DNA of 64,000 nt. It comes from Lytechinus pictus (lineage: Eukaryota). The first letter of the stretch is position 1. Each line of letters opens with the position of its first letter. The position numbers and the translations under genes are program-made. Under the pieces are notes generated by a model. It was not told the origin of the DNA, made no database searches, and saw only the letters and a list, made by a program, of their open reading frames with translations. Shown piece after piece: positions 30,001-63,770 of this stretch. The stretch lies in NCBI RefSeq assembly GCF_037042905.1, contig NC_087248.1, positions 11,284,001 to 11,348,000 of the forward strand. The letters run 5' to 3'.

Positions 30001-33000
30001 TATCTTATTCCACCAAAATGTAATGACTATTCCAAGATCTCTTTGCTCCCAACAAATATCTGAATTTTGGTGTGTCAAGATTTGAATCCTCTGTAATATT
30101 ATCAAACGACATGTTTGAGCATACATACATGTACAGAGGGTTTAAAATTGATTCAACTTCCAAAGCCACGAAGGCCACTGATGTGGAAGCTCTGTTGACT
30201 GGCCTTGGAAATTTGTTGTCTCATTTCTGTTTTCCCCATTTCTGCTCTAATGTACATGGAGAAATATGCCCTATGGCTCAGTGGCTTTGCCCCTAAATTA
30301 TTGAAATAGTAGGCCTGCGTAATATACATTCTCATTTTCCTAATCATCGTAATGGCCATTGTCGTCATAGTCATCATCAACATCATTATCTGTAATTTAT
30401 AATTATTATAATTATCATCATTTACATTATCATCATTATGATCATTGATATCACCATCACAATGATCATTATCATCGTCAACAATATCAATAATATTAAT
30501 ATTATTTGATTCTTTATTTATTAATTTTTTAAATATCATTAATTTCTCTAGCAGACCTGAAGCGGAACAAATGACCGCTCAGGAGGCATGGGCAGGTGGG
30601 GGTAAAGAGGAGAGCAAGGATGGGGCCGCCAGCACCATACAGGCCAGCTGGAGGGGGCACCACGGCCGCAAAGGGGACGAGAAGGCTGGCCGCGCCCAGA
30701 AACAGATGCAAGAACAGAGGGTGGAAGAACATATCAAGTACCTCAACATGGAGCTCGATAGGTATGTCACTTGGATCTTAAAGTGTTTTAATAAGCTAAT
30801 TAGCCCTATTGATTTAGGATGATAGTGATAATAATAATGATAATAATAAGTGATTTCTAGGTTTGATAACCGTGCCAACCTTATATCGATTCCAACTCAC
30901 TATTTCACTTTGAGTGCTTTTAAGCTAGAATCAACATAAGCATCTACATATTCAATCCCACCAATATACATACTTGTAAGTCCATCACCAGACCAAATGT
31001 GATGTACCATGTTAAGATTACCCTTTGAATTTTGTTGATGTGTGCAGGACACGTCAGATGTACGAACAAGAGAAACATCTAAGAGAACTGCAAATGGAGG
31101 CCCTGAAACTACTTTGGAATCAGGTAAATCACTTTAGAAAGTGTAAAGAGAAAGGGTGGGGGGCTGTTGTTCGTTGGATAAATAGAGAGAGAGAGAGAGA
31201 GAGTGGAGGAGGGGAGTTTGGAGGGATTGCTTGCTAATTTGGGAGGGTGACAGTATGAGAGTTAGAGGAGGAGAAGCAGGAAGATAGAGTATGAGGAAGA
31301 GAGAGAGAGAGATAGAAGGTAGATAGACAGGAGAGAAATGTAGGAGAAATAAAGAAAAGAAGGTGGAGAGATGGAGAGAGTGATGAAGAGTTGACTCCTA
31401 TTCCCAAACTGGGTAGGAAGAAATGGATAGAGATAGTGAGATAGAGGAAAAATACATGTAAATTGAGAAATAGAGAAAAGGAGATTGGGAGAGTAACAGA
31501 GAGTTTAGTGCTAACCCAAAACTGCTGACTCTTGTCCAGGAAATGCCTTCACTCTCAGGGGGGAAATGGCCACAAACATTTTTACTGCTCCTCCAAACTG
31601 CGGTCCATCTATAAATAATCGATCCCTAATTATAATTTCTGGCAGATATAATCTTGTTAGGCACTCATGACCTTTAAATAACTCCCCAAGGACCCACCTA
31701 GACCTAGATTTAGTACCCCTTTTCCTATAGAGTGATATCAAATTAGCATACCTGGCAGTGATCTCTTGATAAATATGGTGCACATGGAGTTTATTATCTC
31801 CTATTTACATCGCCATTTACACTTGTACTACCAGGGGCCCGTAACACAAAGCTTAGCAATGATCTTAGAACTTTGTTCAACGATTGATTCCATAGACTAC
31901 AATATACAATCAATCGTGAAAATCAAGCGTACGATTAATCACTAACCTTTGTGTTTCGGGATTCTGGCGGACCCTGTAACATAAAGCTTAGTGACTGAAC
32001 ATCGGGCTCATTTTTGCGATCGATCATGCTCAATAGTCAATTATGCAATCACCCCTATGATCAATTGGTAAGCAATATGTGACAGGGCCCTGCTTATTGA
32101 TACACTCTTACGTGCTGCTGTCCTGATTCTTTGACTCTTAAAATATTAGATATAAAAGATATTTGCCATGCATGCAATGGTATTGCCTTGGACACAAATA
32201 TCGTTGAGAATGAAGTAATACATAATAAAAGAATTCAATAACTTATTTTGTGGTGTTTGATTTCATCATTCTCAAATTCGGCATGGAGATTCATGTTTAG
32301 TGTCATACAGGTTCTTATTGACTGTTTCAATCTCATCTGTTTTAAAATCTTTTGTTTTGAAGACAACAAATCCTAATGAACCATACATGTATGAACATTT
32401 TTATGATTTCAATTTTAAAAAAATGCTGCTTTTATGTTTACTTTTATCATATCCTGTCAATTCAACTTTTATTCTCTCCCTAATTCTCATTGTTTTTATG
32501 AATACAATTACAAAAATGTACTGATATTGTAGAGTTTGATTATTCCATCATATTGTCTCAATGGTTCCAATTTTTATATTTTCTCTTTAAGATAATTCTG
32601 AAATTCAGAATGCTCATACATGTGTAATGGTGTACCTATTGTCATACACATTTGCTTCTCAATTTTGCTTTTCAATTTGCAAATTATTTGTTCACGTTGA
32701 GTTTGCAAAATGCAAAAGCAGCCAATTGAACTTCTTTGAGACGCACTATTTTGTCGCCTCTGCAGCAATAAAACATTAATTGCATTATTTTATTGGTGAC
32801 CTTGCAGTATGTGCTGCACTCAACCCAGGTGAGGTAAATGGGTACCTGGCAGGAATTAATTCCTTGGAATGCCACCGCGCTGTAAAAGGCTGCCGGGCTA
32901 AAGCCAGGGTAATTATATCCAAGTCCTTTGGAAGCGCATAGAGATGTTATGTCATAATGTGATATGTGCTATACAAGAATGGCGTTATTCTCCCCAGATT

Positions 33001-36000: not shown

Positions 36001-39000
36001 CCACGGAGCTAGTTGCCACAGCTCGCTCAGACACAAGCATTGCCCTGAAGTGGAAGCCGTCATCCATGCCTGGTGAGGAGGGTGGGGCAAGGCAGCTCAT
36101 CAGTCCCATCAAGGGTTACAAGCTCTTCATTCAGCTGGGAGAGAATCACAGAGAAGTGATGGATGTGCCCTATCCACAGGCCATCCTGGGGGGACTTACT
36201 CCAGGATGTTACAGGTCAGGAACATGTCATGGTCTATCCTCCTTTTTGCACATGTTGCTATCATGGTGTTCATTTATATTATGTTTGGTTAATTATATTT
36301 GTTTTTGAGGTACAGTATTTGTTCATTATATATAGTTGGAATCTGTCATGAAGGCCAAAAGTCTCTGCAGTTCTGTCCCATTTTTGAACTGCTGTATTGA
36401 TTTGTTTAGACAACAATGTATCTTTTGGAATCATTCTCTGTTTTTTTTTTCAGTTGAATGGTTTAAAAAGAATTGTATGTATAAATTTGAACCTAAATAT
36501 TAAACCAACCCTTTCAATAAGTCATATTCATGGACTGTACATTTTGATTTATTTCAGTAAATTATCACAAAATAATGTTTTCTGTTACATTTGCCGGGGG
36601 TCTCATCTTCATGAAATATAGGGAATGTTATTTTGAATGTTATATATCCATTGAATTATTTTTTAAACAATTCTTTGTGATTATAGGTTCAGAACTGTTG
36701 TGAGCTTGTTGATTATTATAAACTTTTAAATATATTTTCATATCCTTAATTCTTTATTTTATATTTAGTACTGCATCTATTTTATTTGAAAGATAAAACG
36801 TTAAGGTTGTATTGCTTCAATCTCTTAATTGACACAGACTTGCAAATGACTTTTGTTTGGTACTTTTTTATATTTTTAGATTTTCTGTTCGGGGAGTTGG
36901 ACCAAACACTGAGTCTGATGATTCAAATACAGCCGAGGTGACATTGCCTCAATCTCCACGGGCCAAGAAGGCATCCCCTGCAGAAACTCAGAAAACAAGT
37001 CCAGCAAAGCAACGTCCAGTAGCCAGTCCAAGGAGCAGCAAGGAGAACCAGAAGAAATCCAGTTCAAAGACATCCTCAGAAGCTTCCAAGGAATCCCCCA
37101 AGAAGTCTTTGAGTAAGAAATCCAGTGGCTCTTCAAGCAGAGGGGATGCTTTGAAGGACAAGTCCAACATCGGCAGTCAGAATGCAAAGAATGATGCTAA
37201 GTCAGCAAGAGAGTCTACTAAAGCAGGGAATGGAAAGCAAGTTATGCAGCCTGCTTCTGTCAAATCAAAAAGAGAAACAGACATCGATGCTGAGCCCTCT
37301 GTTGTGGACCTTGAGGACGGTTTGAAAGTGGCCATTGCCAAGTCTGTTGGAGTTGAGATGAGTCAACATATAATTGACACTGCTATCCAGATGGCCATCA
37401 TTGCTCTTATTGATGTTGGTCCTGATGTGGAAGGAGCCAATGCCATTGAGGAAGACAAGAAAAATGGAGGTGGTGGAGCAATTGAAGTTGTCCCTGTCCA
37501 AAAACTTGAAGCGTCGTCCCAAAAGGAAGGTCCACTGGTGGTTAACCAAAGTAGCGTAGTAGACGGACATATTGGTGAGAAAGCAAATGATGTGCAGGTT
37601 TTGTCTAAGATAGTGAAAGAGGGGTCGGGTGAGTGTCAAAAGGGTAATGGTTGTAGAGCCGGTTTAGGGACTGAAAATGTAAATGAAGCAAGCAAGTGTA
37701 ATGGTGTTCAGGGTTTAGATGATACCTCAGGTGTAAACCTTTTGTGTAATGGGGACTCACAGGGTAGTGGCAACAATCAATCTTTACATTGCAATAAGAA
37801 CAATACACACACTGATTCTCCTTCCAACTCAGAATCACAAGTGAAAGAAAGCGTTCCTCAGCCTGAATCAGCAGGGAATGGGTCAGAGCCAAATCAGAGT
37901 TTAGGGAGCGTTGCTGAATCTTCTAAACGAGTTGAACAGCTCTCCATGAAAGCGACAGAAGAAACAGTGTTTAATTTTGACTTCCAAGGTGGGATCCCCT
38001 ACCCTCAATCCCCAACAGGAATAGCAGAGATTGCCACCTCAGAAAAGTTGTTAGTTGTGTCTGAACAGAAGGATGCTCCTGTCAAAAGTCCAAAGCCCAA
38101 ACCCAGCCCTCGTTTGTCAAAACTGGCAGCCAATTTCACTTCAAAATCAGCCAGCAGTAATAGTGCAAATACAATGACTGAGATAAGCGAAATGGATGAA
38201 TCACACAGGGTGAGTGTAGGTCATGATCCTTTTTCAGTGGACTTTGAAGAGTCCTTGCCTGTGAGTGATTGTGATGACAGTGATGATAGGACAGTCAATT
38301 TGAGGTTGGGTGAGGGCAAAGCTAAGAGAGTGGTGAGTTCATCAAGCCTTGAAGACAGCAGAATGTCCTCAGATGAAGCATCTCCTAGCGACCACAGTGC
38401 TTCCTCCAACAAATCTTCCAAGCAGACTGTCTCATTCTCTCTGGCTCCAAAGCCCAACAAGCCCAAACCCAAAGAGGCTCCTGTATGCGCCAAACACAGC
38501 GAGGAAGCCAAGACAAACAACCGCTCCAAAGCAGGAGATGGCACGGAACAGAACAAATCTGATGATAGGCCAAGCAGAGCCACACGACCTACCAACATCA
38601 AGACAATCCTCAGCCCTATAAACTCCCCAATGATGCAGCACAAGTCTAGGAGTAATGGCGGGTCAGGGATTCCGATGGTCCGAGTACCCTCTCCAACCAA
38701 AGGTTTCTTGAGGCTTGGTGGCGGTGTCCACCGTACAACTAGTACCCCGTCCTTGGAGATCTTGAAGAGTCCTGGGGGTAACGGATCAAACGGAAATGGC
38801 AATGGCCAGGTAATGCCATAAATGCATGATGAAGTATCACGATTTGGAATCATAAACCCAGTGCATTTGTATGAATGTGCATGTAGTACTACATTTAGCT
38901 ATGAACTCGTCTTAAGTTTGCACATTGATCTCTGCACAGCCAGTATTATACATGTAGACTATTCCATGGATATGCTACATATGTACATATGTGGCTGTTG

Positions 39001-42000
39001 GATTTTCCCTTTTCGTGATACAGAATTCAACCTTGGCATGAAAATAGATCAAACTAGCTTGATTAAAAAAAATGAGTGATAAATCGCTGTAAACGAAGTC
39101 CCCATCTATGTGACAAAACAGCTATAAAAGGAGAGAAATCGACTACAAAGCAGCTTCAAAATTATAAGTTGCTCACGATTTCTAGGAATTCTTACTGAAA
39201 AGAAATAATTTTGTTTTTAATTTTGAATTAAAGAATGTACTGCGCTGCTACAGCAAAGCTATAAACCAGATGACATGTACGTTCAGTAACATGCAAATTG
39301 ACGAAATATTCTCAACTGGATCCAAATCAATGTAAAAAAATGATGAACAGTAGGATAGGATGGTCTGTAATGCCCCTTACCAATTGAAAAGGGAGTATTA
39401 TTCATTTCTAATCCTCATTCTAAAACACAATGGGAAATGCAAGAATGTTGCTGTGAGAGATGTACAGTCCTTTTGAATCCAGCTATAAAGACCTTTTGGG
39501 CAGTATTCATAAAAGAGCTTCCAATTCGGTGGATTCACAATACGGTGCACCATCTTTCGGTTGCAGCGGACAGGAAGAAATCTGCAATGCCTTGTGAGAA
39601 AAGGTCGACATGTTGCGGGTGCTAGTTCATGGATGCAATTATGCTGTTTACCAGGGTCCAGGGGGTGGGAGAGAAATTTGCTGCATATTTCTCTTCGAAA
39701 TTTAGATCGTTTTGGGTGATTTTTTTCTGCGCTTTTTCCATATTGCTTTCAGTTTTGAAGCATCACAGTCACATACAGTACACTAGCACTGCCTGCACCT
39801 GCGCACGATGTCAACCCCAAAGTTAGAAATTTGCCTGTCTGCGGTAACTGAAAGATGGTATACCATATTGTGAATCCACTGAATTGTACCATGGTACAAA
39901 ACCATGGATTATGCAAATTTGAGTTATCCCTTTTCATTTAAGCATGAATTTAGCTCCCAAAAGCACGCAATTATACTTGGACTATTCTGAGTGTACATGA
40001 TAAGCGTAATTAGTTTGAAAGTTTGAAAGTGGGGATTTTTTTACCTGATTGCTAAGAAAGCATGAATGCTTGTAAGCAAGCAACCAGAGGACCGACGGCT
40101 TAAGGTCCTCTCCGAAGGACCTGGTAATGAGGATTAATGCCTTACCAAAGGGCACTAGCGCACCAAGTGTGAATCGAACCCGGATCACCGGAATACGAAT
40201 CCCCCGCTCTACCGACTGAGCTATCGCGCCTCCGCATTATGTACACCAAAATCTGCATAGTCCATGGTGTTGTACCATGGTACAATTGAAACCTCTTTTG
40301 AGAACACAGGCCTGAGGCCCGTATTCTGAAGTCAGCTTTAACTTAGACCATGGTCTAATTCTGTGCTAAAATTATGGGGAGCCAAAAACTCAACATTTCT
40401 GCTTACATTGTATATTTCTTATATTTACTATTTTGCTTCCCTTTGTTTTTATAATGAAGAAGGTATTTCAGTCATTCTGAGACTGTTATAATTGATATGT
40501 GTGTCATAATAGTTAATACATTTAACATGTACCATTAAATAGAGATTGGTGGCCCAATGGCTCTCCATAGTTAAACCATAACTTTAAACCAGGGTTTAAT
40601 TTAAACCATAGTTCAGAATACGGGCCTATACTGTATGTCCTTTTCAGGTGGCATTCCCACATTTCCTTGTTTGGTTTATGATGAATTTTAAGGGATGGCA
40701 GTAAAAAGATGCATGGAGAATTCTTGTGTGAAAGTTGTAGCTCTTACTTTTGGTAGGCTGCATGAATAGTCTAGGATTGAATGAAAACATCTTTTGCATG
40801 AGTCTAATTTGAATGCTATATTGTTGAGCATGACTCAATGCAATTAATCATGGTAATCATCCCTACAGTCAGTCACTAGCTCTATGTTACAGGGCCCTGG
40901 TGAGTGTTTCATAAAGCTGTTCGTAAGATACGAATCACTTTACGCATGACTGGTAACCCTTTCTCATGCCAAGTGATATCCCTATGTAATTGAGTTAGGA
41001 CCTAAGATCATGTTCCAGTCGATCGTAAAGTTGTGCTTAACTTTACGAACAGCTTTATGAAACACCCACCTGGAGGCCGTTTCATAAAGCTGTTCGTAAG
41101 TTAAGAGCGACTTTAAGAACGGCTGGTGATCCTTTCTTACGCGCTAAACCATCGCCTATGGTGTATACCATTTACCACAAGAAAGGATCACCAGTCGTTC
41201 TTAAAGTCGTTCTTATCTTACGAACAGCTTTATGAAACGGCCCCCAGGTCTTTTTTGCAATAGATGTACAGAAGATGCATAGTTTACCAGCACACCGCTT
41301 ACTGAGTCAAGTCATATACATGTAGTTAATTATCCCTATCCAATTTAAATTGATGTCTATTATAGCCAATGACATTGATTGAATTTTGATATCAATTTTA
41401 CTTTCATTATCAATTTTTGTTTCATTTTCCATTTCTATTTCACTTCTAATTTACATTTATATCCAATTATTCAAATTAAAATCAAAATCATATTCAAAGT
41501 CAAGTCAAAGTCCAAATCCAAATCTTTACCAAATGCAAATTATCAAGATTTAAATTTGAATAGGCCTCCATAGTCAAGTTTAATTCCATTTCATTTCATT
41601 CAATTCTGATTTATTCAAAGATTACACAATACTCTAGTATTTTTCCTTCCTAAGTCACTTCATATTTTATTGATATAGTGAGTTGTACATGAATTTTTAA
41701 CTTATTTTTTACCCATGTTATCTGAGGGCCCTGTGTTGCATTAAATTACATCATGTATTAATTTTTGGTCCTTCATACAGTTACAATAAACAAATATATC
41801 AGGCTTTGAGAAAGTATAGTGGAATTATTTATTCGAGGTTGGTCTGGCAATTACTATTTTTCCCGAGGGGCGAAGCCCCGAGGGAAATATAGTAGTTTTG
41901 CCAGTCCAACCGAGGATTAATAATTCCCACTATGCTGGACTTGCCCGGGAGAGAGAGCGCGCTGGCCGGTACGCCCGAGAGTTTAGCTCATAGGTTTAGC

Positions 42001-45000
42001 TAGATATCCAGTTTTGTGAAATAATGACGTCAGACCTCGATATATCCAAAAATATATCGAGGTCTGACGTCACGCAACATCATAGTTGAAATATATTCGG
42101 TCACATGATGCTACTTGAACCAATCACTATACAGGATTTACTCAATGTAGGATATAATATTATTTGTAAATTCGAAACAACATATCTGGGTAAAACAGTA
42201 CTTAAGTGTCCTGGCAAGAGTTTCTCATGTCACAAATTGATTAAAAAACCTGTAAGGGGGGGGGGAGGATAAATCAGCCCCAGTCTCTTCAGGATTGGTT
42301 TTATTTCTTCATGCAGTTCTTGTCTCTAGAATTTAACAGTGATTGGTTTGTATGTTACCAATGCAATGGGCCATGTTGCAGAATTGCACCTGTTCCCGAC
42401 AGTATGATCAAAATGATTCCAATGTTGTAATCTACAAGATGATTGTATCCTTCGAACAGACCTCTATGAATGCCTGCAGCAGAGGATATCTATATATGGG
42501 CAACTTAAAGGGACAGCAAACTGATCAACACTGTGTGGTTTCTCATTGGTGGCATGTTATTAAAGGACAAGTCCACCCCAACAAAAAGTTGATTTGAATA
42601 AATAGAGAAAAATCTAAGAAGCATAACACTGAAAATGTCATCAGAATTGGATGCAAATTGCAAAATAAGAAATTTATGACATTTTAAGTTTCGCTTAATT
42701 TCACAAAACAGTTATATGCACTTACTGGTTGGTATGCAAATAAGGGAATTGATGACATCACCCACTCACTATTTTGTATTTTATTATATGTAATATGAAA
42801 TATTATAATTTTCTTATTGTATGTCAAACTACATGTACCATTACTAGTACTTTAACATTTTATGGTTCAGTCAAGTTGGTCCTAATTGTAAAATCTGTAA
42901 TAATTAGAATATTGTATAATTCAAACAGTAAAATCAAAAGAAATAGTGAGTGAGAGATATCATGGACTCTCATTTGCATGTCACCAGGTTGTGCATATAA
43001 CAGTTTTGTGAAAAATAAGCAAAACTTTAAAATGTCGTAACTTTCTTATTTTACATCCACTTTTGATGAAATTTTCAGTTTTATGCTTTTTTAATTTTAT
43101 TAAAATCAATTTTTTCTAAAGGTGGACTTGACCTTTAATGGCTAGTCTTGGAATATACCTTTTGAGATAACCATTTATAATACAGAGAATAAATTAGCAT
43201 TATTTGTATAGAGAAACCAAAATGTTCATGAGAAGAACATGTTTCAATACTACTTGGTAATATAATTACTGTGATATGAATGGATTAAGTAGTGAATTAG
43301 CATGTTATTATTCAAGTGGGCCTATTCTACAAGACTACACTGCTGAGAACATTGCATTATGGGGTAGGAACCTGGCTAGATTTAAGAAGTTGAGGACTTT
43401 AGCTGGTGCTGTTAGTGCTGCTGGTACTCCCTTCAACATTTACTTCCTGTGCTCCGGAAATAAAAGCCTTGCAGCTCTCTATCATAATGATGCCCTCAAA
43501 GATGGTGGAGTTGTTTTCCGTGGGGTCCACTGATAGATCCACTGCGAGGGCCTTGTGGCCGCGGGTTGTACTGTAGCAGCCCACGTCCTCATGGACCAGG
43601 GAATATGGGTATTTACAGGTTTCCGTCAGGAACCACTGGTTCAGTCCGATCTCGCTGAACTGTTCAAAGCAAAAATTATTGGAAGACCATAAAAATGACT
43701 GTAATGATGATGATCCATCTCGTTTTGTCACATTGGAATGGTTTTTTTAGCACTGTAGAGATGTATTATTATCCGGTCATTGGGTTCTGAAGTAATAACT
43801 ACATGTGATTGATACAGAGTTTTTGCACTGAAATGCATGAAGATTCCTAGAACCGTGTTTCGTTCTTAAATCAACAATTCATAGGGTTTTTTTGGGGGGT
43901 AAATGATCTTATGGTATCAACAATAAAAATTTTGAAAATCATAGGGGTCCTTTTTGTAATTGCTCAAGGGTTATTTGTTGTCATGTTGACATTTTGGGGG
44001 TAAAATTAGATGGGCCACCTTTTTTTATTTGGGGGGGGGGGGCTACTTTTCACTGACTACTGCCTAAATTTGAAACATTAGATATTATAAGCTTTAACAT
44101 TGTACTGTAGGGAATGGGGATTTTTTGGCTCTTTTTATATCTTTCTCTGGCTTTTTTGAGAATTTCAGGGCGATATCACCCAAAGCCTTGTGTAAAGTTA
44201 TTCTGTAAAGAATCCTTCCTTACACCCCTATGTATGTTTTTAGCTTATGATTTTGCTATTACCTGAGGAAGTTGTACCAGCTTATTGTCCGATGTCAATG
44301 CAATGTCAATGGCCTTTGCGTCTATTATACTTTCACACAGAGGAGCAGATGTAGGGCCCCTCTTGACTCGAGCTGCACCATTTGACCGGGTCCTGCCCCG
44401 TAGGGATCTTTTCCTGAATAAAAGAGAGTTGGTGATAGTTGATAATAGTGGTGATGATGATAATTTCTGCCCGAGTTGAGTGCCGAATATCTTGTGACCA
44501 CAAATATCAGAGAGAGGTACATGTTCTTAGGTGCTACATATAGGTCAGCTACATGGGGATTTATCATTTAGAAGAAGAAAGGGTTACCAGTCAAGCATAT
44601 TGATAAAGTCATTTGAAACTTACAAACAGCTTTATGAAAAGGCCACCTTGGGGTGTTTCACAAAAAGTTACATACTGTAAGTAGGACTAACACGATTATT
44701 CAACTCAAGAATAGACCAATTTATGCAGACTTTCAAAATGGTATATTACTGCAATACCCTGATTTAATCTTTACTTTCCTGCACATGGTGTATCCATTTT
44801 TCTCTGAATATTCCAGGCAGAGTTTTCCATGGTGGAATAATCAAGTATGCTTCATTTAGATTGGTTTTCAGTGTTTGTGTGTTTTGATTCTGACATTGTA
44901 TGAATTCTTTCTGAAATGATATGCATACTCTTCAGAAAATGTTTGCAGTTTTATTGCACACCTCCCACCAATTAAAGTTCTGAGAGAGTATCTCTTTGAA

Positions 45001-48000
45001 TTCAAGGGTGACCTGTGACCTGTCCATCGGGAATGCTGCAGAAAATGCGATGCACTCATGGGTGCAAAGAATAGTTTGAGCAAAGAACAAAGGTCCTGTT
45101 TCTTAAAGACTTGATATACTAACAAATGCATGATTTCTATAACAAATTTACTATCAGCCAATCAGATTGAACAATTTCAGTAGCTTTCAACTGTTATTGC
45201 TCATTTGTAGTTTTATGAAACGGGGCCCAAATGTTGTCTTCTTGAACCGTTTATCTTGGTGAAGATTAACCTTAGAATGCACATATATGCTAAACCAACC
45301 CAACCTTATTGAATTTTTCACGCTGATATCACTTAGCAGCTTCACATCTCGAGACTGGTCTTTGAGTGTCCTATGGGAATCCCTAATGGTGTTAGCATTA
45401 GCATCTCGTCTCTTTCTCCGCCGCCTTGAGTCGCTTCCACTGCTACCGGAAGAGCCATAATTTCTCCATTCATAGCTGCGACTGCCACTGCTACTGCTAC
45501 TGCTACCTCCGTAATATCTCAAGATACTGTCATGGGTCTTTTCCTGTTGTTCACCAGAAGTACCTGGTGAAGATGAATCATCGAAAGAATCGCAGAGCTT
45601 TAAACAAGATTTAGCAGAGACTTTGTAGTTACAGAATTCAGGTTTAAGAACATTTATATCTCATATATTTGTGGAAATCATCCTTGTTTTAATGAGCGTT
45701 TGATATTTTGCAAGAGTTGTTTTATAAATAAAGAGGGATTTCACAGGATGTAGTCCAAAAATTGTGGAATAACTTACAAGCACGCTTACATTCTGCTTCA
45801 TCAAGAGAATCTTTGAAGACAAAACTAAAGAATTATTAATAAAAAAATCTAAAGCAAAAATGTGATATATTAAAGAAAACATAACCATGTCACTTTGAGA
45901 TTTAGAAAGCAACCCCCCCCCCAAAAAAAAAGTGCCTTCATGTATGCCTGTGCATTCCTTCATTTTTACACACTATTTTTTTGTCATGAGGAAACCTTAG
46001 TATTGTCCTTTGCATAAAATGCCTTCATTCTAACATTTTTCAATATCATGGTTTTAATGATCATCTTTAAGAAATTTTGTGTTACTGCATGTCATGAGAA
46101 TTCCGTCAATGAAAATTTATACAGACTTCTGGTACCACACTATCGCACCTGCTCACCTGCATCATCATCAGTTCTTCCCGGATTATTATCCAGGAATTCG
46201 TCCAGTTTCTCTTGATCCACTGGGTCTAAAAGTGACTCTGTCGGGACGTTGACCCGTGTTGCTGTTTCCTCGAGCTCAGTTGCCTCTTGGCTGGTGGAGA
46301 AGAACCCCCCGTACTGGGCCAGTATGGAGTCCCTCTGGTCGTTATTGAATTGGATAACGCAGGCTCCTTCTAGTTCTTCATCACCATGCAGTAGCTCCGG
46401 GTTCTCCTCCAGCATCTTGATAATCTGTATGGGATTGGCATAGAGTTAGGGTTGCCAGGATGATATTTGCGTACTATGACATAAAAGTATTCTTTACAAA
46501 TTTCTATATATCCACAACTTTATATTTTTACAGCCAGTTGTCTGAAGGCTTGGATGCAAAAAAGTTCTGAATGTCAACATTTCATTTTATTACTTACAAT
46601 GTAGGATTAAGTCAGTGCAATATTCTACATTGAGTAGAATATGAAATTAAGATATGAAACCTGAGATTAGTAATGTTTTATGTACATGTACACATTAGTA
46701 CACATTAGCAGTCTTTATTCATTTATGATGCTTAAACTTCAAAGGAAAAAATTAAATGAAAATTCAAATTTCGGCAAAAATCAAATGACGAAATCTGATC
46801 AAATATTAAAAGGTTTCAAGTAACATTATCCTTTGAATAGACCAGCTCAGAGTTATCTTGTTGGCAAGTTTTCTCACATAAAAAGGCAAATTTCGAAGAA
46901 AGATATTATGTAAGGTAAGCATGTCTGACATAGCAGGATTCAGAATTTGCCTAAATCAGGTGACTAGAATCGCATTTCAATAAACTCTTAGGGGTTTAAG
47001 TTATTTGTTGCATTTCTACTGAGGATGCATGTTGTGATTGCATTGTAAAATACCAGCCACTAATGGACACGTTTATGCTTTACAGTGGATCTAATGAAAA
47101 GCACAATATAAAAGCATAGGTGAATAACCAAGACCTCATAGATAACGCTAATGTCGTTGAATATTAAACCACCATGCCCTTTGAGTTCCAATAACCCTTT
47201 TCTGATCATGCACAGAATGGAACCATGAACTGGGTCCTGTAACACAAAGGTTAACGATCGATCACATGCTTCATTTTCACGATCGATTATACATTGTGGT
47301 CAATGCAATCAAGTACACAGATTTTCTTCTATGACGATTGCTAAGCTTTGTGTTACGGGCCCCCACTTGTTTAAACCTCACCTCTTCGCTGTTGAGAATG
47401 GTCTCAATCTGTTCGTCCGTCAACGTAAGCCTCGGGTGAGTGTCGTCTTTCGGGCAGAAGATTTCGCAGAACTTATCTTGAAAGAAATTGCCCCGTGCAA
47501 AGTTTGTCCGCTGCCCTGTGACCCCCGGCAGCCCCCCACCATGGCAGATTGAGAGGATGAGGACAAGGACAAATCCCAAATCCTTGTACTCCATCATGGC
47601 CTCAACCCGACCAATACTTTTCCTATCTCTCTCCTCTCCTCTTATGCGAATAATTACCTTTCTATTCAAGTTCCAAGAAGCCGGCAAATTATCTCTGATA
47701 TCCCTACAACCACATCACTGTGCTATGAGTATACAAATGTATAATTCCAGTCAAGCCTTTGCTTTGAATATAGCTCCGTCTTTATAACGAAACAACAAAT
47801 GAAGCCACAGATTTGGCAAGGTGAAACAATCATAAATATTATGCCCCTTGACCAAGCATAGATTATTTCCAGTATACAGCATATTTATGAGGACTTGTAG
47901 GATTCCTATTGATTATTTTTCTGAAGGGGATGCTGCAGAGATTGATTTTTGCCACATTGTGTTGCAAGGTGTCGGCTCTGTGTCCTTGAGCCTTATAGTC

Positions 48001-51000
48001 ATACAGCAAATACTGTGATAATCCTAACATCTTTCTCTCTATTTACCGCACTTCCCCAAGCTGTGAACTTCCGGGGAGAGCGGTCGTGCAGTAGCATCAG
48101 ACTTTACGCATAAAGATATAAATATACAGTCATACTTTCATCAGCCTTCCATCAGGTTTTAAAGGCCGCATTTATCTATTCCCCTTCAATGCAGTTCTTC
48201 TTGTGGTGTTTACCAAAGGAATGCAAGTACAAGCTGTAGAACCTGGGTATGAAGACCACTTTTCTCGTGATCCTCTGACTGGCCTTTGTACACAGTTATG
48301 CCCTTTTTGTGTGTTGTCGGATGGAACAGATGTAAAGGGCAAGGTTGCCTAGAATACTGATTGGGGAATTTCAGAGTTGTTGGGAAAAATGACCATATGA
48401 TGAACTATTAATATTTATAATCAATTGTACATTTTTTGGGGGGTACGTGATTTGCCAGAGACTTTAATCTTAGTTTGATATTAATTTTTCATGTCCTCCA
48501 ACATTTTCAAGGCCTTGGATTGAGATTTAAATGTGAATGAAAAAGATGGCTTAATTATATCAAGATGCGTGATAACTGAATAAATAGTAAGATAATAGAT
48601 TGATGCAATATTTAGTCACTGTTAGATCATAATAAAGTTTTTTTTTATGAAACTGCTCGACCAGATTTATATCTTACTAGTGGTTCCATGACATTTGCTC
48701 CAGCGACAATTGCTCCTCTATAAATTCCACACACTTATTGAATAACTATAAACTTCAACACTGAATTTATCACTATACCACACCCAAACCCTAAACCTAA
48801 CATAAAACCCTATTGCAAAGAAATAAAGCCCGTAGCCATTGTTTCATGAACAAATGTCTCCCATATTAGTAGTCTTCTTGAATCTACATCTAATATGAGT
48901 ATGTAACCTGAAAGTAAAGGGTCGCATTTTTGTAGTGCCGAGTTAAAACAACAGATTTGTAGAGCCATTGTTTTCCAGTTGAATCGTACGCGACTAGTGG
49001 AGACTAGTACCCAAGTGGAAATTTGTGGTGAGCTAAATTACGTCAGATTAGCGCCGTGACGTGTGAAAAATAAAATCAATATGACCAGTACCATTTCCAG
49101 TGAAAACAATACAGTGCCTGCAGGGGTGGTGCCATTAGCGTACACAGGATTTTTGAAAGGGGGGGTAGAGTTGAATGAAAATTTGACAAGCAAATGTAAA
49201 AAAAAGGTTTTTACCCCCAAAAAAATTAGAAAAATTACGTCATCTCGTAACCAAAAAAAATTGACAAGCAAAAAAAAAAGGTTTAAACTAGTTTTCAGAT
49301 CTGATAACTTTCATTGATTTTGATTGGCTGAGAAGCATTGTTACTATGGTAACTCGCATAAAACAGGACTTGTCGGATCTGACAAATCCTTTCATTTAAC
49401 GCTCTCCAGGAGTAGTCTTTGAATCCTGAAACCTCTCTGATTAAAGAGTCGGAACTAATTCACAGTACAGATGCCTCCATGCATTTCTTGTCTTAAAGGG
49501 ATGGTCCAGGCTGGAGATATTTATATCTCATTAAATAGAGTAAAATCCACAAAGCAAAATGCTGAAAATTTGATCGAAATTGGACGACAAATAACAAAGT
49601 TATTGAATTCCAAAGATTTGCATTATTCCAGTGAAACAGTTCTAGGCATGTCCTTAGGAATATTTATTAGGTGGGCTGATGATGTCCCATCCCCACTTGT
49701 TTTTTTCTTTTTTATTATATGAAATTAGGTTTATTCAAAATTTTTCTATCAAGAACTAAAACTATTCTAATTGACAACTGATTATGTGCATTAGTCATTT
49801 ATTGCTGCAACTTATTTCATCATAATAGAGACACATCATATACACATGTATGAAAAAATGAAACATTTATGATTTTATGTAATAACAGAAGAAAAAGGAA
49901 AGTGGGGATGTGACATCATCAACCTACCTAATGAATATTCATGATGATGTGCAGATAACTGTTTTCACAAAATATTGATAAACTTTAAAATTCAATAACT
50001 TCGTTATTTTTTATCCAATTTTGATGAAATTTTCAGCATTTTGCTCTGTGAATTTTACTCTATTTATTTAGATATACATGTAAATATCTTCCGCCTAGAC
50101 CATCCCTTTAATGAATAAGTTACTCCCTTCTTGTTTTAACTGTTTTATGAAACTGGCCCCAGGTTTTGATCAATTTAAATTGGCTATAAAATTTGAAACC
50201 AGTGTGGGATCCACTTGAGTCTGACCCCTCTGGTAGAAGTTTACAGCTGCTTATTCATTTAGTGTATGCATGCACTACGAAGCTACCTATCCCAGATTTG
50301 TACTTGGCATTGAAACACAACATATGTGTGTACAATGCAAATTACAATCAGAGTCATTTCCTTTCCTCCAGATTACCTTGATTTTGTTCTCATTTCTCAC
50401 ACTTGAAATACTCATATTAAACAAAAGACCGGTAATAACTTGGTTGCATGCTTGTTATGAATACATGCATTTTGTTATAAAACCCATGGCAGTTTTTGCA
50501 TGTACAGTGGTGCTGAAAAGTTAGTGAACCCCACCAGAAAATAAATAATTCAAAGGTGTTTAAGTTCTGCCATGTTTTAGATATTTAATTGTGAAGTCAG
50601 GTGATAAAATATTACATTCAATAGAGTTTCTCTGGGCCCACCGAACATTGTTGCATTGTTGTCTATATTCAACACTCGGCATGAAGGAGTGCATTTTGTG
50701 GTGGAGTTCACTAACTTTTGAGCATAGAAGTATGAAACAATATTTTCAGTCATGCCTGCATTGACATTACAGTGCAAAAATATGTATCATATTCGTAACT
50801 CTGATATTCTTAGGTGTTTTTTTTTTAAATCTATTATGCAGGAATTTTGTAATTTCTGTGCTTTTATTGAATTTAAAATCAACTTGCAGTGAGGGTGAGC
50901 TTCCCCTTGGAGAACAAAGATGACTGATGTGACATTAAGATTATAAATATGTATTTCACAAAAGTATGTGTATCTCTAGCGAATGTCATTTTGTGCTGCC

Positions 51001-53109
51001 CAAACTGAAGTAAGAAAAGCCCTACCTATTGTTGTTTTTTAAAGGGATGACTTTGATAGAAGTCTGACTTAAAAAAAAAATCAGATAGTATACCAAATTT
51101 TGTGCGTTTGGTGAGAAACGATGTGAAGAGTTTGCTGAACTTTTGCTCTCAGGCTAATGTACCTCTAATGATCTTTCTTTCAGAATAAGACAAAGCCTGA
51201 ATCCCCATCCACTGACAGCCAGCCTCAACAGCCTCTCTTTGCCAGGTCTCGCTCCAAGAGCGGTGGAACCACCCTATCTAGCCCCAGCGGAGGGGGGCAG
51301 AGTGCCTGTAAGGGGCGCATCAAGGCCGGGAAGAAGGGCAGCAAGGTACCCCAGATCAAGCGAAGTGGCTCCGAGCCTAATCTTTACCTTCAGAAGCAGC
51401 TGGAAGCGGAGGATGAGCTGGAGATGCAATCGGAAGCAGGTGGGGTTTTTCAGAAGTATTATAGGGTCCCCAGTTTTCAAAAATGCAAATCCTATATTCG
51501 GGGGTATTCTAAACAACAAATCCTGTGTTTCTCTGATGACTTAACAAATAATATAGAAAAGAAGTTGTAAACAGTAAAAATCTTGGAAACATGTATAAGT
51601 TGCCATTATGTACACCCTGCATAATATACAAGGAAAGCTCGACAGATAAGTGCTGAACACTGCAAACAGGTTTGTTCAGCAGATATTTCACTGATGCACA
51701 TCTTTTTTTATTGGATTTTGCTTTTTTAATAATATTCATGAATTTCAAATTGTTTTGGCACTAAAAATTGTGTTTGTTTTCCAGGAAATTCTTTTCCTTC
51801 TGTGTACCTCCCTAATTCCATGAAATTTTTTCTTTTCCTATTTCTTGGAAAATTGAGATTTTATATCAGGGTTGGTCCTTACTTTGTTGCCTGCCTGATT
51901 GTTGCCTACCTGGCAAAAAGGCGTTAGTGCAAGCATGATAAATACATGTATGATGCAACTGGAAGAAAGACCTTAGCACTTGCATGCTCTACAAGATAAT
52001 TGGAGGTTACACCTAAGTTGATGTCTTGCTAACTGCAATGTAGTCATCTTGCTTGCATTAAAATCTGTATGAAAGTTTGGTACATCGAACAATTATCAAT
52101 TTTCAAAAGGGGGAGGCAAATAATGTATGATTAATACTTTCCCCACCTTACTTTTGATGATAAAGATTGGCCGATTCCCCAAGTTTAATTTGTTGTTCAA
52201 TCCTGTCACCAAAAATGAAAAAAAAATACATCAATAGACGAAGGGGCAGTTTTTATTTTGATATTGGGTGATGAGAAAAAGTACCCCTGTTTTTGGAAGA
52301 TGACCTCATGTCTTGTATAAAAGTTATGAAAGGAAGGCTTTTTAGTGTTACATGTAGTTGTTCTTGAAGACAATTTTAATGTATGCACTAAAAAAGAAAT
52401 TAATTTCTTGGTTCTGTTTTCTCCCCTAGATGGCGGTTCTCCAATCAAACAACGGAGAGGTTCTGCTGGATCACAGGCTAGCAGTAACAAGCAATCCCGT
52501 TTGATGTCTCCTGGCTCCAACAGGATCTCCCCTCCTGGAGGTGGATCCTCTAAGCTCCCAATTAAACACAGCACCTCCACCCAAAACCTCAGTATGAACG
52601 GCTCCTCCAGGAGTTCCTCATCCTCCTCCAGCTCTTCATCTTCTTCTTCTTCCGTCGCTTCCGCTGCAGCCAAACGAGCCACCAGCCCCGGCCCAAGCAA
52701 GCGTGGCACTAGCCCAGGCAGGACCAACAAGCGAGGCACCAGTCCAGGCCCCACAAAACGTGGCACCAGTCCCGGTCCCACTAAACCTCAGCGAGGCACC
52801 AGTCCTGGCCCTTCTTCCAAAAATCGAGCCATCAGCCCGGGTAGGACACCGCGGACCAAACAGGTGATGTCTCCAACTGCAGGGATAAAGATGCCTTCAA
52901 GCAGTGTGAGCAATGCTAATAATAGCAACAGTGACGAATGCACTGGGAAACTGAGCAAGATGGCCAAGATGTATCGCAATCTGCACAAGAAGGAACTGAA
53001 AAATAATGAAGACAATGCCAATAATAACAACAACTGTAATGACTTCGTGAGCGGAACTTCAAGCAACAGTACCCTACACAGTGGTGATGCTACTGATATG
53101 CCATTGTAA
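1..53109 (+). CDS. CEP97: Centrosomal protein CEP97 orthologue (LRR + LRRCT + IQ + coiled coil, plus FN3 and long disordered tail); 19 coding exons, 5' end just outside the window
   Basis: Exons join(<1..20,394..548,1460..1618,7253..7354,8081..8194,11708..11799,18124..18222,22887..23001,24382..24747,26121..26250,28027..28741,30555..30761,31048..31123,33471..33701,35065..35646,35991..36214,36880..38809,51184..51439,52430..53109). All introns are GT-AG with matching phases and give one open frame of ~2,083 aa. Diagnostic CEP97 peptides: [74 protein letters not shown]. Confidence 0.93.
394..548 (+). CDS. CEP97: CEP97 exon 2 (LRR start: [11 protein letters not shown]...[23 protein letters not shown])
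   Basis: ttaacag acceptor, CAG|gtatgg donor; LRR pattern. Confidence 0.93.
622..770. mobile_element. MITE family F (TTTCATGAAA...TGATGAAAC ends; internal GTTACCATAGTAA)
   Basis: Related copies at ~49290-49408, 53534-53670 and 61917-62073. Confidence 0.6.
1460..1618 (+). CDS. CEP97: CEP97 exon 3 ([53 protein letters not shown])
   Basis: gggcag acceptor, AAG|gtacag donor; 159 nt, phase 0/0; SDS22-like LRRs. Confidence 0.95.
2021..2188. mobile_element. MITE family A (TIR GTTTCATAAAGCTGTTCGTAAG)
   Basis: Inverted termini; copies at 34399-34584, 40899-41070, 41072-41245, 54034-54209 and ~20325-20580. Confidence 0.8.
3350..3715. repeat. CT-rich low-complexity tract
   Basis: Polypyrimidine (CT)n-like run. 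Confidence 0.85.
4007..4315. mobile_element. MITE family D (TIR GGCCCGTATTCTGAAG)
   Basis: Copies at 40316-40626 and 53712-54023 share the same TIRs. Confidence 0.8.
6506..6960. mobile_element. Non-autonomous DNA transposon, TIR GGGCWATTCCA, 4-bp TSD AATA (Sola-like, tentative)
   Basis: AATA|GGGCTATTCCA ... TGGAATTGCCC|AATA; three internal GGTTACTCAYGTTAC motifs. Confidence 0.65.
7253..7354 (+). CDS. CEP97: CEP97 exon 4 ([34 protein letters not shown])
   Basis: ccgtag acceptor, AAG|gtgggt donor; 102 nt LRR. Confidence 0.95.
8081..8194 (+). CDS. CEP97: CEP97 exon 5 ([38 protein letters not shown])
   Basis: tttacag acceptor, GAG|gtaggg donor; 114 nt LRR. Confidence 0.95.
8258..8485. mobile_element. 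MITE family C (TIR GGGCCCCRTCTTACAAAGAG)
   Basis: Copies at 15434-15702, 54432-54694 and 54695-54915. Confidence 0.8.
9221..9352. mobile_element. MITE family B (TIR GGGCCCYGTAACACAAAG, ~130 bp)
   Basis: Copies at 31834-31964, 31969-32090, 47232-47364 and ~20399-20495. Confidence 0.75.
11708..11799 (+). CDS. CEP97: CEP97 exon 6 ([30 protein letters not shown]), ends at a U12 donor
   Basis: ccttag acceptor; GC|GTATCCTTTT minor-class donor; phase 2. Confidence 0.92.
11878..12172. repeat. (CAT)n trinucleotide microsatellite
   Basis: Degenerate ATC/CAT repeats. Confidence 0.9.
12896..13438. mobile_element. GC-rich non-autonomous DNA transposon with 8-bp TSD GTACAGTC
   Basis: GTACAGTC|CCCGGGGGGGGGCACTC ... 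GAGTGCCCCTCCCCCCCCCCGGG|GTACAGTC; CpG-rich, so probably a young insertion. Confidence 0.85.
13811..13827 (+). promoter_or_regulatory. RFX X-box (GTTGCCTAGCAAC) overlapping a CCAAT box
   Basis: Near-perfect X-box consensus GTNRCC(N0-3)RGYAAC followed by CCAAT. Confidence 0.4.
14140..14290 (+). mobile_element. SINE central-domain fragment (Meta-domain-like)
   Basis: CTTTCGGAGGAGACTCTAAGCCGTCAGTCCC...GCACGCTAAAAAACC...GTAAAGAGTAGGG; similar to the core of the SINE at 40085-40233. Confidence 0.55.
15434..15702. mobile_element. MITE family C copy
   Basis: GGGGCCCGTCTTACAAAGAG...CTCTTTGTAGACGGGGCCC. Confidence 0.8.
16672..16685 (+). promoter_or_regulatory. RFX X-box (GTTACCATAGCAAC)
   Basis: Full X-box consensus; a second weaker site GTTGCTATGGATAT at 16782. 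Confidence 0.4.
18124..18222 (+). CDS. CEP97: CEP97 exon 7 ([32 protein letters not shown]; LRRCT)
   Basis: U12 acceptor, AA|gtaagt donor; alternative in-frame AG ends at 18138. Confidence 0.92.
20848..21250. repeat. GA-rich microsatellite region
   Basis: (GA)n runs and poly-G. Confidence 0.8.
22085..22200 (-). mobile_element. SINE/LINE 3' tail (L2-type ...GGCGCTATACAAATGCC(TAT)n)
   Basis: Reverse complement GCGCTGAAAGGCAGCTCGTGCTAAAGCCGGGGTAAT matches the element at ~32875-32910. Confidence 0.6.
22887..23001 (+). CDS. CEP97: CEP97 exon 8 ([38 protein letters not shown])
   Basis: acgcag acceptor, GAG|gtatta donor; highly conserved CEP97 peptide. Confidence 0.95.
23040..23920. repeat. Tandem satellite, ~205-223 bp unit, about 4 copies
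   Basis: TAAAGATATT anchor at 23241, 23446, 23669 and 23891. Confidence 0.85.
24382..24747 (+). CDS. CEP97: CEP97 exon 9 ([18 protein letters not shown]... Pro/Ser-rich)
   Basis: gatcag acceptor, AAG|gtgagt donor; phase 0/0. Confidence 0.9.
25388..25990. mobile_element. MITE family E, TTAA TSD with AGG...CCT termini (Kolobok-like)
   Basis: TTAA|AGGTCAAGTCCACCCC...GGGGTGGACTTGTCCT|TTAA; copies at 42564-43134 and 55913-56490. Confidence 0.85.
26121..26250 (+). CDS. CEP97: CEP97 exon 10 (VLSPGSAW...VFLQDIE)
   Basis: cttttag acceptor, G|gtatgc donor; LQDIE resembles the LEDIQ motif recalled from vertebrate CEP97. Confidence 0.88.
26615..27064. repeat. Tandem duplication (~228 bp x2)
   Basis: ACTTTGATCGATAAT...AAAATGATACCCTACATGATATGATTAT...GATGAGTGAGTTTCTCAGC occurs twice. 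Confidence 0.85.
28027..28741 (+). CDS. CEP97: CEP97 exon 11 ([17 protein letters not shown]... low complexity)
   Basis: gtgtag acceptor, AG|gtatgt donor; LASEASFLP resembles CEP97 LSSESTFMP. Confidence 0.88.
30555..30761 (+). CDS. CEP97: CEP97 exon 12 (IQ motif [16 protein letters not shown], then coiled coil)
   Basis: tagcag NAGNAG acceptor, AG|gtatgt donor; calmodulin-binding IQ consensus. Confidence 0.92.
31048..31123 (+). CDS. CEP97: CEP97 exon 13 ([25 protein letters not shown])
   Basis: gtgcag acceptor, CAG|gtaaat donor; 76 nt; LWNQ motif. Confidence 0.93.
31180..31505. repeat. GA-rich low-complexity tract
   Basis: (GA)n purine-rich run. Confidence 0.8.
31834..32090. mobile_element. 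Two adjacent family-B MITEs
   Basis: Two ~125-bp palindromic units with CCYGTAACAYAAAG termini. Confidence 0.7.
32795..32990 (+). mobile_element. SINE 3' half (conserved core ...CAACCCAGGTGAGGTAAATGGGTACC + L2-type tail)
   Basis: Core motif followed by AAGCGCATAGAG...GTGCTATACAAGAA tail. Confidence 0.6.
33471..33701 (+). CDS. CEP97: CEP97 exon 14 (VKTLQEWKQ...[11 protein letters not shown])
   Basis: gtgtag acceptor, CAG|gtatta donor; phase 0/0. Confidence 0.9.
33712..34288. mobile_element. Fold-back MITE with ~230-bp inverted arms, AGG...CCT termini and degenerate TTAA TSD
   Basis: Arms include CTTTCTATGGGGATCCTCAAATTAGCCACCAT / ATGGTGGCTAATTTGAGGATCCCCATAGAAAG. Confidence 0.85.
34399..34584. 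mobile_element. MITE family A copy
   Basis: Same TIR and internal AAGGATCACCAGTCGTT. Confidence 0.8.
35065..35646 (+). CDS. CEP97: CEP97 exon 15 ([11 protein letters not shown]...EDAEPK)
   Basis: agacag acceptor, AAA|gtaatc donor; phase 0/0. Confidence 0.85.
35991..36214 (+). CDS. CEP97: CEP97 exon 16 (fibronectin type III domain, first part)
   Basis: ccctacag acceptor, AG|gtcagg donor; [23 protein letters not shown]...IKGYKLFI...[11 protein letters not shown] fits the FN3 consensus. Confidence 0.87.
36880..38809 (+). CDS. CEP97: CEP97 exon 17 (end of FN3, [15 protein letters not shown]; 1.9-kb disordered S/K/E-rich segment)
   Basis: tttttag acceptor, CAG|gtaatg donor; lies within the 654-aa ORF 36857..38821; in-frame stop at 38821 if unspliced. 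Confidence 0.87.
40085..40233 (-). mobile_element. tRNA-derived SINE (tRNA-Thr-like head with A/B boxes + Meta-like core)
   Basis: Minus strand GGCGCGATAGCTCAGTCGGTAGAGCG...CCGGGTTCGATTC, then TCCTTCGGAGAGGACCTTAAGCCGTCGGTCC; acceptor and T stems do not pair. Confidence 0.8.
40316..40626. mobile_element. MITE family D copy
   Basis: GGCCCGTATTCTGAAG...TTCAGAATACGGGCC. Confidence 0.8.
40899..41245. mobile_element. Two tandem family-A MITEs (preceded by a family-B remnant)
   Basis: Two complete TIR pairs joined at CCACCTGGAGG. Confidence 0.8.
41813..42160. repeat. Palindromic element: ~124-bp hairpin with GCGAAGC loop, plus a second TGACGTCA-flanked hairpin
   Basis: TTTCCCGAGGGGCGAAGCCCCGAGGGAAA core; TGACGTCAGACCTCGATATAT...ATATATCGAGGTCTGACGTCA. 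Confidence 0.75.
42564..43134. mobile_element. MITE family E copy (TTAA TSD)
   Basis: TTAA|AGGACAAGTCCACCCC...GGTGGACTTGACCT|TTAA. Confidence 0.85.
43399..43659 (-). CDS. Nested gene exon 5 ([15 protein letters not shown]...[15 protein letters not shown]...IESCKAF...*)
   Basis: tttgaacag acceptor; TAA stop at 43399-43401. Confidence 0.87.
   Translation of the reverse strand, partial: FSEIGLNQWFLTETCKYPYSLVHEDVGCYSTTRGHKALAVDLSVDPTENNSTIFEGIIMIESCKAFISGAQEVNVEGSTSSTNSTS
43399..47597 (-). CDS. Nested antisense gene: secreted neurotrophin/Spaetzle-like cystine-knot precursor (384 aa) with only 4 knot cysteines
   Basis: complement(join(43399..43659,44263..44413,45305..45563,46157..46424,47382..47597)) = 1155 nt; all GT-AG, phases 0,1,2,0. 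Signal peptide [21 protein letters not shown]; furin sites RRRRKRR, IRKR, RVKR. Predicted mature domain [12 protein letters not shown]...[11 protein letters not shown]...QWFLTETC...[15 protein letters not shown]...[10 protein letters not shown] aligns by eye to NGF VCDS..ATDIKGKEV..QYFFETKC..CTTTHTFVKALTMD..IRIDTACVC. Confidence 0.85.
44263..44413 (-). CDS. Nested gene exon 4 (RKR...RVKR|[32 protein letters not shown])
   Basis: ctcttttattcag acceptor, CAG|gtaata donor. Confidence 0.85.
45305..45563 (-). CDS. Nested gene exon 3 (G/S-rich linker, RRRRKRR furin site)
   Basis: cttcaccag acceptor, AG|gttggg donor. Confidence 0.83.
46157..46424 (-). CDS. Nested gene exon 2 (acidic pro-region [12 protein letters not shown]...DDDA)
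   Basis: atacag acceptor, G|gtgagc donor. Confidence 0.85.
47232..47364. mobile_element. MITE family B copy in intron 1 of the nested gene
   Basis: GGGTCCTGTAACACAAAG...CTTTGTGTTACGGGCCCC. Confidence 0.75.
47382..47597 (-). CDS. Nested gene exon 1 (signal peptide + [13 protein letters not shown] pro-motif)
   Basis: GCCATGATGG start context; GAG|gtgagg donor. Confidence 0.83.
49497..50107. mobile_element. TTAA-flanked MITE related to family E (AGGGATGGTC...GACCATCCCT)
   Basis: TTAA on both sides, long imperfect inverted arms. Confidence 0.8.
51184..51439 (+). CDS. CEP97: CEP97 exon 18 ([10 protein letters not shown]...[28 protein letters not shown])
   Basis: ctttctttcag acceptor, G|gtgggg donor; phase 0 in and phase 1 out fit the neighbouring exons; GC-rich coding-like island. 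Confidence 0.78.
52430..53109 (+). CDS. CEP97: CEP97 terminal exon 19 (S-rich, KRGTSPGP repeats, ends ...DATDMPL*)
   Basis: ctcccctag acceptor; open to TAA 53107-53109; phase 1 fits exon 18. Confidence 0.8.
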
Positions 53110-63593: not shown

Positions 63594-63770
63594 ATGGCGG
63601 AAGACGGACCAAAACCTGTCGACATTGACACGAGTCGTTTAGACTCCAAGAGACAAACTCTTGACGATGCTTACGCTGCTCCTGCCAATTTTCTTGAAAT
63701 AGATGTCTGTAATCCTCAAACACATGGTATAGGGAACAAAAGATACACAGATTATGAAGTCAGAATGACG
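63594..63770 (+). CDS. SNX3: Sorting nexin 3/12 (PX-only SNX), coding exon 1; gene continues beyond the window
   Basis: MAEDG...TLDDAYAAPANFLEIDVCNPQTHGIGNKRYTDYEVRMT matches the SNX3/SNX12 N-terminus (LNDAYGPPSNFLEIDV.NPQTVG); aacATGG start; ACG|gtaagt donor. Confidence 0.93.

Follow-up and report, generated by a model that had tools for sequence, protein, structure and literature searches.

A conserved and expressed gene for a predicted secreted pro-protein, probably nested antisense within an intron of a CEP97-type gene in the sea urchin Lytechinus pictus

A stretch of 64,000 nucleotides (nt) of the Lytechinus pictus genome (assembly GCF_037042905.1, contig NC_087248.1, positions 11,284,001 to 11,348,000), referred to below as the window and used for all coordinates unless a locus is named, carries LOC135153874 on its minus strand, a real, expressed, spliced protein-coding gene that is already annotated. 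We consider it probable that this gene encodes a secreted pro-protein ligand of the cystine-knot type lacking the full knot, and that it most likely lies antisense within an intron of a CEP97-type gene. According to this interpretation, the precursor would enter the secretory pathway and be cut at an RVKR site, perhaps also at two further polybasic sites, RRRRKRR and RKR. Cleavage would free a small, glycosylated, beta-rich domain with two disulfides. Outside the cell, this domain would serve as a ligand of cystine-knot cytokine or growth-factor type, resembling Spätzle and the neurotrophins but without a complete knot.

The window is free of any N, and the splice model computed on it consists of five minus-strand exons separated by introns that all begin with GT and end with AG, with phases 0, 1, 2 and 0. 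The joined exons make up 1155 nt, that is, 384 codons and a stop codon. This model agrees exactly with the open reading frame (ORF) of 384 amino acids (aa), with canonical splice sites and the same phases, that had been read from the sequence alone in a preliminary description of the region. Moreover, the product is identical, letter for letter, to XP_063954452.1, the "uncharacterized protein LOC135153874" of Lytechinus pictus (CM073229.1, GCA_037042905.1). The features of the gene, including its untranslated regions (UTRs), are as follows.

43029..47871, minus strand: nested-gene transcript including both UTRs, as outlined by an RNA contig of 1794 nt from sequencing run X1 that lies on 43029-43659, 44263-44412, 45304-45561, 46155-46424 and 47382-47871.
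47382..47597, minus strand: coding exon 1, with the start codon, the predicted signal peptide (approximately aa 1-22) and a conserved pro-region motif (splice model and match in Strongylocentrotus purpuratus).
46157..46424, minus strand: coding exon 2, pro-region with a conserved motif (splice model and S. purpuratus match).
45305..45563, minus strand: coding exon 3, Ser/Gly-rich pro-region of low complexity with the polybasic sequence RRRRKRR (aa 208-214, 45406-45426; splice model).
44263..44413, minus strand: coding exon 4, with the RKR site, the putative cleavage site RVKR (aa 263-266, 44359-44370), and the opening part of the C-terminal domain with C274, the first of its cysteines (splice model).
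43399..43659, minus strand: coding exon 5, with the remainder of the C-terminal domain (C313, C326, C361 and an NNST sequon) and the stop codon (splice model).
43096..43101, minus strand: AATAAA signal in the 3′ UTR, recognized as a motif; the RNA contigs end at 43029-43144.

Nine sequencing runs were found, and four of them (X1, X2, X3 and X7) were compared with positions 42600-48500. Runs X1 to X3 contain about one fifth of the sampled words, which roughly equals the exonic share of the window. Each of the four junctions predicted earlier (47382/46424, 46157/45563, 45305/44413 and 44263/43659) is crossed exactly by a single RNA contig from X1 (1794 nt) and by another from X2 (1542 nt), while contigs from X3 and X7 cover the same junctions piecewise. 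As placed on the contigs, the junctions are 43659|44263, 44412|45304 (cut shifted by +1), 45561|46155 (cut shifted by +2) and 46424|47382, and the skipped segments read CT..AC on the plus strand, which corresponds to GT..AG on the minus strand. Since the contigs carry no direction themselves, the strand of the transcript was deduced from these dinucleotides together with the ORF. From the extent of the contigs, the UTRs measure about 270 nt at the 5′ end and about 370 nt at the 3′ end. In the coding sequence, they differ from the window at ten positions, eight of which fall in the low-complexity exon 3; the differences are equally divided between synonymous and nonsynonymous changes (five each).

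Several further observations concern the surroundings of the transcript. At 47629, in the 5′ UTR, five bases of the window are absent from all RNA contigs and several other differences lie nearby, which reflects allelic differences of the sequenced animals from the assembly. A TATAAA sequence is present at 47786, and the contigs from X1 to X3 begin upstream of it (47835-47871). One X7 contig reaches 48363, which reflects either a start further upstream or unspliced or genomic material in this run; X7 covers the introns at low depth. Furthermore, the summed depth of the RNA contigs is very high (hundreds to about 20,000) at 42600-43190, 44570-44766, 44964-45357 and 47131-47524. These stretches fall in introns and in the 3′ flank of the gene, and the contigs there are joined in many irregular ways or end loosely. 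Dispersed repeats with transcription from numerous loci are the probable cause, and one of the stretches adjoins the donor site of exon 1.

The architecture of the 384-aa protein is that of a predicted secreted pro-protein cut by a proprotein convertase. Its N-terminus is hydrophobic, with a peak at residues 7-17, and no segment of membrane grade follows in the remainder of the protein. A pro-region of about 245 aa carries two well-conserved motifs and three polybasic sites, namely, RRRRKRR (aa 208-214), RKR (aa 248-250) and, as the last, RVKR (aa 263-266). Immediately after RVKR starts the C-terminal domain (aa 267-384, about 118 aa), which contains four cysteines, at positions 274, 313, 326 and 361, in addition to the NNST sequon. 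The N-terminal signal, the lack of a later membrane-spanning segment and the conservation of the polybasic sites are all in line with the earlier proposal of a complete gene for a secreted protein.

Orthologues were found in two other sea urchins. The L. variegatus protein has 386 aa (isoform X2 of LOC121414123, an NCBI model) and shares 93% identity in its C-terminal part, and the S. purpuratus orthologue (XP_011665789.1, LOC100890096) is a 168-aa model with 46% identity. Each of the five exons has a counterpart in the S. purpuratus locus (L001), at approximately 6005-6253, 7364-7650, within an ORF at 8558-8995, and at 9983-10135 and 10450-10821. The 168-aa model comprises only exons 4 and 5 and begins at an internal methionine of exon 4, while exons 1 to 3 lie upstream in open frame and include a signal peptide and RRRRKRR; LOC100890096 is thus probably truncated at its 5′ end. 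For exon 1, the identity of L. pictus to S. purpuratus is 62% when the whole tblastn alignment with its 12-residue insertion is counted, and 73% over the 71 aligned codons. The signal peptide, the pro-region motif and the NSIR at the end of exon 3 are kept in S. purpuratus, where the orthologous exon-3 ORF ends in NNSIR. In all three species, the sequences RSN.AARVKR and PLC and the four cysteines are invariant, with the furin-type RVKR site, at which we predict cleavage, standing directly before the C-terminal domain. In the comparison of L. pictus with S. purpuratus, the ratio of nonsynonymous to synonymous substitution rates (Ka/Ks) amounts to 0.17 in exon 1 and 0.21 in exon 2 and rises to 0.38 in exons 4 and 5 combined, values to be read with a Ks of approximately 1 to 2, hence partly saturated. 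This comparison indicates that the protein is under purifying selection and that its C-terminal domain is the fastest evolving part.

The same data bear on whether the locus could be transcribed without yielding a functional protein, either as a decaying gene or as a spliced non-coding RNA with a chance ORF. The lack of a recognized domain and the fact that five of the ten coding differences between RNA contigs and window alter an amino acid would be compatible with this explanation. However, the ORF is intact over five exons in L. pictus, a 386-aa model exists in L. variegatus and every exon is kept in S. purpuratus, the Ka/Ks values stay between 0.17 and 0.38, and neither the cysteines nor RVKR vary. 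We therefore regard a non-functional product as extremely unlikely.

The gene is flanked on the plus strand by exons of a larger gene with leucine-rich repeats (LRRs), whose relevant parts, using the exon numbers of the preliminary description, are listed here.

36879..38809, plus strand: host exon 17, a large, disordered region with its donor at 38810, beyond which read-through would stop at 38821; the S. purpuratus orthologue is 75% identical with the donor at the same position.
38810..51183, plus strand: putative host intron of 12.4 kilobases (kb) holding the nested gene, as judged from the flanking exons, the S. purpuratus annotation and the conserved splice positions.
51184..51439, plus strand: host exon 18, 92% identical at the protein level in S. 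purpuratus and without an in-frame ATG upstream (orthologue comparison).
52430..53109, plus strand: last host coding exon, with a Ser/Pro-rich tail and the stop codon (orthologue comparison).

Matches to LRR_8 and LRR_4 were obtained for the host on plus-strand exons 339-563, 1409-1624, 7253-7357 and 8051-8206, together with a weak match to IQ at 30571-30819 (E 0.0024) and a weak fn3 match near 36000; the annotated L. pictus host product carries LRR_4/8/9. The combination of LRR and IQ suggests a CEP97 (LRRIQ2)-type architecture, and we name the gene by this domain layout. A search of the PDB with the LRR and IQ exons of the host gave nothing useful. Exon 18, which lies within the supposedly disordered tail, is conserved at 92% versus 75% for the neighboring exon 17, and may be a short, conserved functional module that has no Pfam match.

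The transcript of LOC135153874 (43029-47871) lies between plus-strand exons that end at 38809 and start at 51184, that is, in the antisense position between host exons 17 and 18 that had been claimed for it. In S. purpuratus, the orthologues of exon 17 (L001 16582-14636) and exon 18 (2384-2121) likewise flank the orthologue of the nested gene on the opposite strand, so that the arrangement holds up in a second echinoderm. In the annotation of that species, one minus-strand gene, encoding an LRR protein of 2143 aa, extends across the orthologue. In contrast, the L. pictus annotation (window coordinate = 57598 minus L002 coordinate) terminates an LRR product of 1768 aa at 38821, where the frame runs through the donor as GQ followed by VMP and a stop, and places another gene, of 316 aa, at 50949-53109. 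The earlier warning that automated annotation could miss the nested gene or split its host was thus borne out for the host and not for the gene itself.

Taken at face value, the L. pictus annotation speaks against nesting: the CEP97-type gene would end by read-through of the donor at 38821 followed by polyadenylation, 51184-53109 would be a separate gene, and LOC135153874 would be intergenic. ATTAAA signals at 39062 and 39227 are compatible with this arrangement. Hosts of antisense nested genes have moreover been reported to undergo cryptic polyadenylation as a consequence (PMC3192792), such that a short isoform may coexist with a long one. However, the only rebuild of the 316-aa model in a plausible frame requires a 15-nt first exon of five codons, MYFTK (50949-50963), spliced to 51184, and blastn of the 284 base pairs upstream of exon 18, MYFTK included, found no match in the S. 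purpuratus locus. Exon 18 has stop codons just upstream and no in-frame ATG, and its protein sequence is the well-conserved one noted above. Furthermore, S. purpuratus has the donor of exon 17 and the acceptor of exon 18 at exactly the same places, each with phase 0, and the S. purpuratus annotation unites the two parts in a product of 2143 aa, compared with 1765 + 311 = 2076 aa for the joined L. pictus product. Because of the conserved splice positions, the matching phase and the makeshift five-codon first exon, the split of the L. pictus host at the 12.4-kb intron is probably an annotation artefact and the gene nested, while an adjacent position is unlikely. Nevertheless, a genuine shorter form of the host transcript, terminating after exon 17, may exist alongside the long one.

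The relationship of the C-terminal domain to known ligands was addressed with several types of search. Language-model features from the Atlas placed the domains of both L. pictus and S. purpuratus nearest to Spaetzle, NGF and IL17 clusters, with a score of 0.89 and 183-186 of 256 features shared, and Spaetzle/NGF clusters outnumbered IL17 clusters among these nearest matches. These features are the one source of the family link, which we treat as a lead. The protein is accordingly filed, again as a lead, as working like a cystine-knot cytokine of Spätzle/neurotrophin-like type, and not as a member of a family. Exhaustive phmmer with the exon-5 peptide against 1.84 billion representatives retrieved the protein itself, its S. 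purpuratus orthologue and one further protein; this third match, a repetitive sequence of 1952 aa with nonsensical Pfam matches, was judged spurious.

A number of results weigh against reading the protein as a cystine-knot ligand. Pfam hmmscan at E values up to 10 assigned no family to the single exons, the whole protein, its C-terminal 123 aa or the S. purpuratus orthologue, and matches to NGF (PF00243), Spaetzle (PF16077) and IL17 (PF06083) were specifically lacking at this threshold. Sequence searches of the PDB, with the single domain sequence and with a three-species profile, yielded only a chance match (E 0.94). Two profile searches of a set of 5.8 billion proteins found nothing beyond sea urchins, low-complexity words having swamped the candidates in the second. 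AlphaFold2 models built from three-sequence alignments had low mean predicted local distance difference test (pLDDT) values, 41 with the domain alone and 31 with the complete precursor; at such confidence, the matches of a fold search would be meaningless. Atlas scores below 0.9 are rated as leads by the tool itself. Finally, the pro-region at the N-terminus shows stronger conservation than the C-terminal domain, and the active product could instead reside in the former.

This last point leads to the alternative that the protein is no relative of Spätzle or the neurotrophins and is instead either a divergent IL-17-type cytokine or a prohormone with peptides cut from its N-terminal pro-region at the polybasic sites. 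The lower Ka/Ks of exons 1 and 2 relative to the C-terminal domain and the presence of three polybasic sites are consistent with a prohormone. A long furin-cleaved pro-region ahead of a C-terminal domain is, on the other hand, a common trait of neurotrophins, Spätzle, Trunk and PTTH, not of IL-17, and the predominance of Spaetzle/NGF clusters among the nearest Atlas matches points the same way. An IL-17 would agree with the IL17 clusters among the nearest ones, with the existence of invertebrate IL-17s that have two disulfides, T1C included (PMC11087794), and with the 35 IL17 genes counted in sea urchins (PMC5457136). However, the final C-x-C shared by IL-17s and neurotrophins is a single cysteine here (ESCKAF in L. 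pictus, ESCSAF in S. purpuratus), and Pfam IL17 was not matched. Overall, we find this alternative doubtful, although it deserves more weight than the others considered here, and we retain the cystine-knot ligand without a full knot as the probable identity of the protein.

A bolder extension of this preferred reading would see in the protein a small, fast-evolving, sea-urchin-restricted family of knot-less four-cysteine ligands, Spätzle/neurotrophin-like, that feed the expanded echinoid Toll-like receptors or Trk/p75, with the antisense position coupling their expression to a host isoform truncated after exon 17. We rate this combination as quite improbable. The suggestion in the preliminary description that convergent transcription could couple or interfere with host isoform choice would be legitimate by analogy, since antisense nested genes are reported to be capable of inducing intron retention as well as cryptic polyadenylation of host transcripts (PMC3192792).

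Taken together, these results describe a protein that is uncharacterized, conserved, expressed and predicted to be secreted and processed at furin-type sites, and that may correspond to a cystine-knot cytokine minus one disulfide. If the Spätzle/neurotrophin affinity is true, it would represent a third, aberrant type of ligand beside the two sea urchin neurotrophins, as well as a candidate for an endogenous ligand in an animal whose Toll-like receptors form a very large family. For annotation, the outcome is a L. pictus CEP97-type gene that is probably split at its 12.4-kb intron and a S. purpuratus nested-gene model that is probably cut short at the 5′ end. The intronic position as such matters little, such arrangements being common in animals.

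Elsewhere in the window, an ORF on the plus strand at 63594-63770 begins MAEDGPKPVDIDTSRLDSKRQTLDDAYAAPANFLEIDVCNPQTHG. We take it to resemble the first exon of a PX protein of the sorting nexin 3/12 type.

Among known systems, the genomic arrangement is best compared with intronic nested genes on the opposite strand, such as 2mit within Drosophila tim2 (PMC3786989) and LRRTM genes within alpha-catenin genes (PMC3933685). As in those cases, a complete gene with its own exons would lie antisense in one intron, in an arrangement kept across genera. We see no difference in kind from L. pictus, where the continuity of the host is deduced from the orthologue annotation and the splice sites. The nested arrangement itself is ordinary, because intronic genes are common, amounting to about 6% of Drosophila genes (PMC3786989).

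With the neurotrophins (NGF family, PF00243), the protein shares the predicted layout of a secreted pro-protein in which RxKR is followed at once by a C-terminal domain some 110-120 aa long, as well as the NGF clusters among its nearest Atlas clusters. Its domain has four cysteines versus six, and the knot of disulfides I-IV, II-V and III-VI therefore cannot be tied. The motifs LCES, NQWFLTETC and ESC-x-A around the cysteines of the L. pictus protein resemble VCDS, KQYFFETKC and TACVC of NGF, a similarity that we treat as a lead only. Judged by the cysteine spacing, the missing pair may be III-VI. A multi-exon precursor is also found in Sp-NT2 (PMC2772990). The S. purpuratus orthologue was considered as a candidate for Sp-NT or Sp-NT2 themselves (PMC2772990), and this identity was ruled out, since the codons after the first cysteine differ.

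Spätzle (PF16077), the arthropod Toll ligand, is comparable as a multi-exon precursor activated by a protease, a mode of activation that we would also expect of the sea urchin protein, and the Atlas clusters nearest to the protein of either species, L. pictus or S. purpuratus, are those of Spätzle. Unlike Spätzle, the nested-gene protein has fewer cysteines and no PF16077 match. The invertebrate IL-17s (types T1B, T1C, T2 and T3; PMC11087794) differ from it in their terminal C-x-C, and the protein combines a long, presumably cleaved pro-region with the lack of a PF06083 match. These cytokines nevertheless offer a precedent for its cysteine complement: forms with two of the three knot disulfides have been described, including type T1C, which lacks 3/6 (PMC11087794), indicating that a cystine-knot cytokine fold can exist with two disulfides only.

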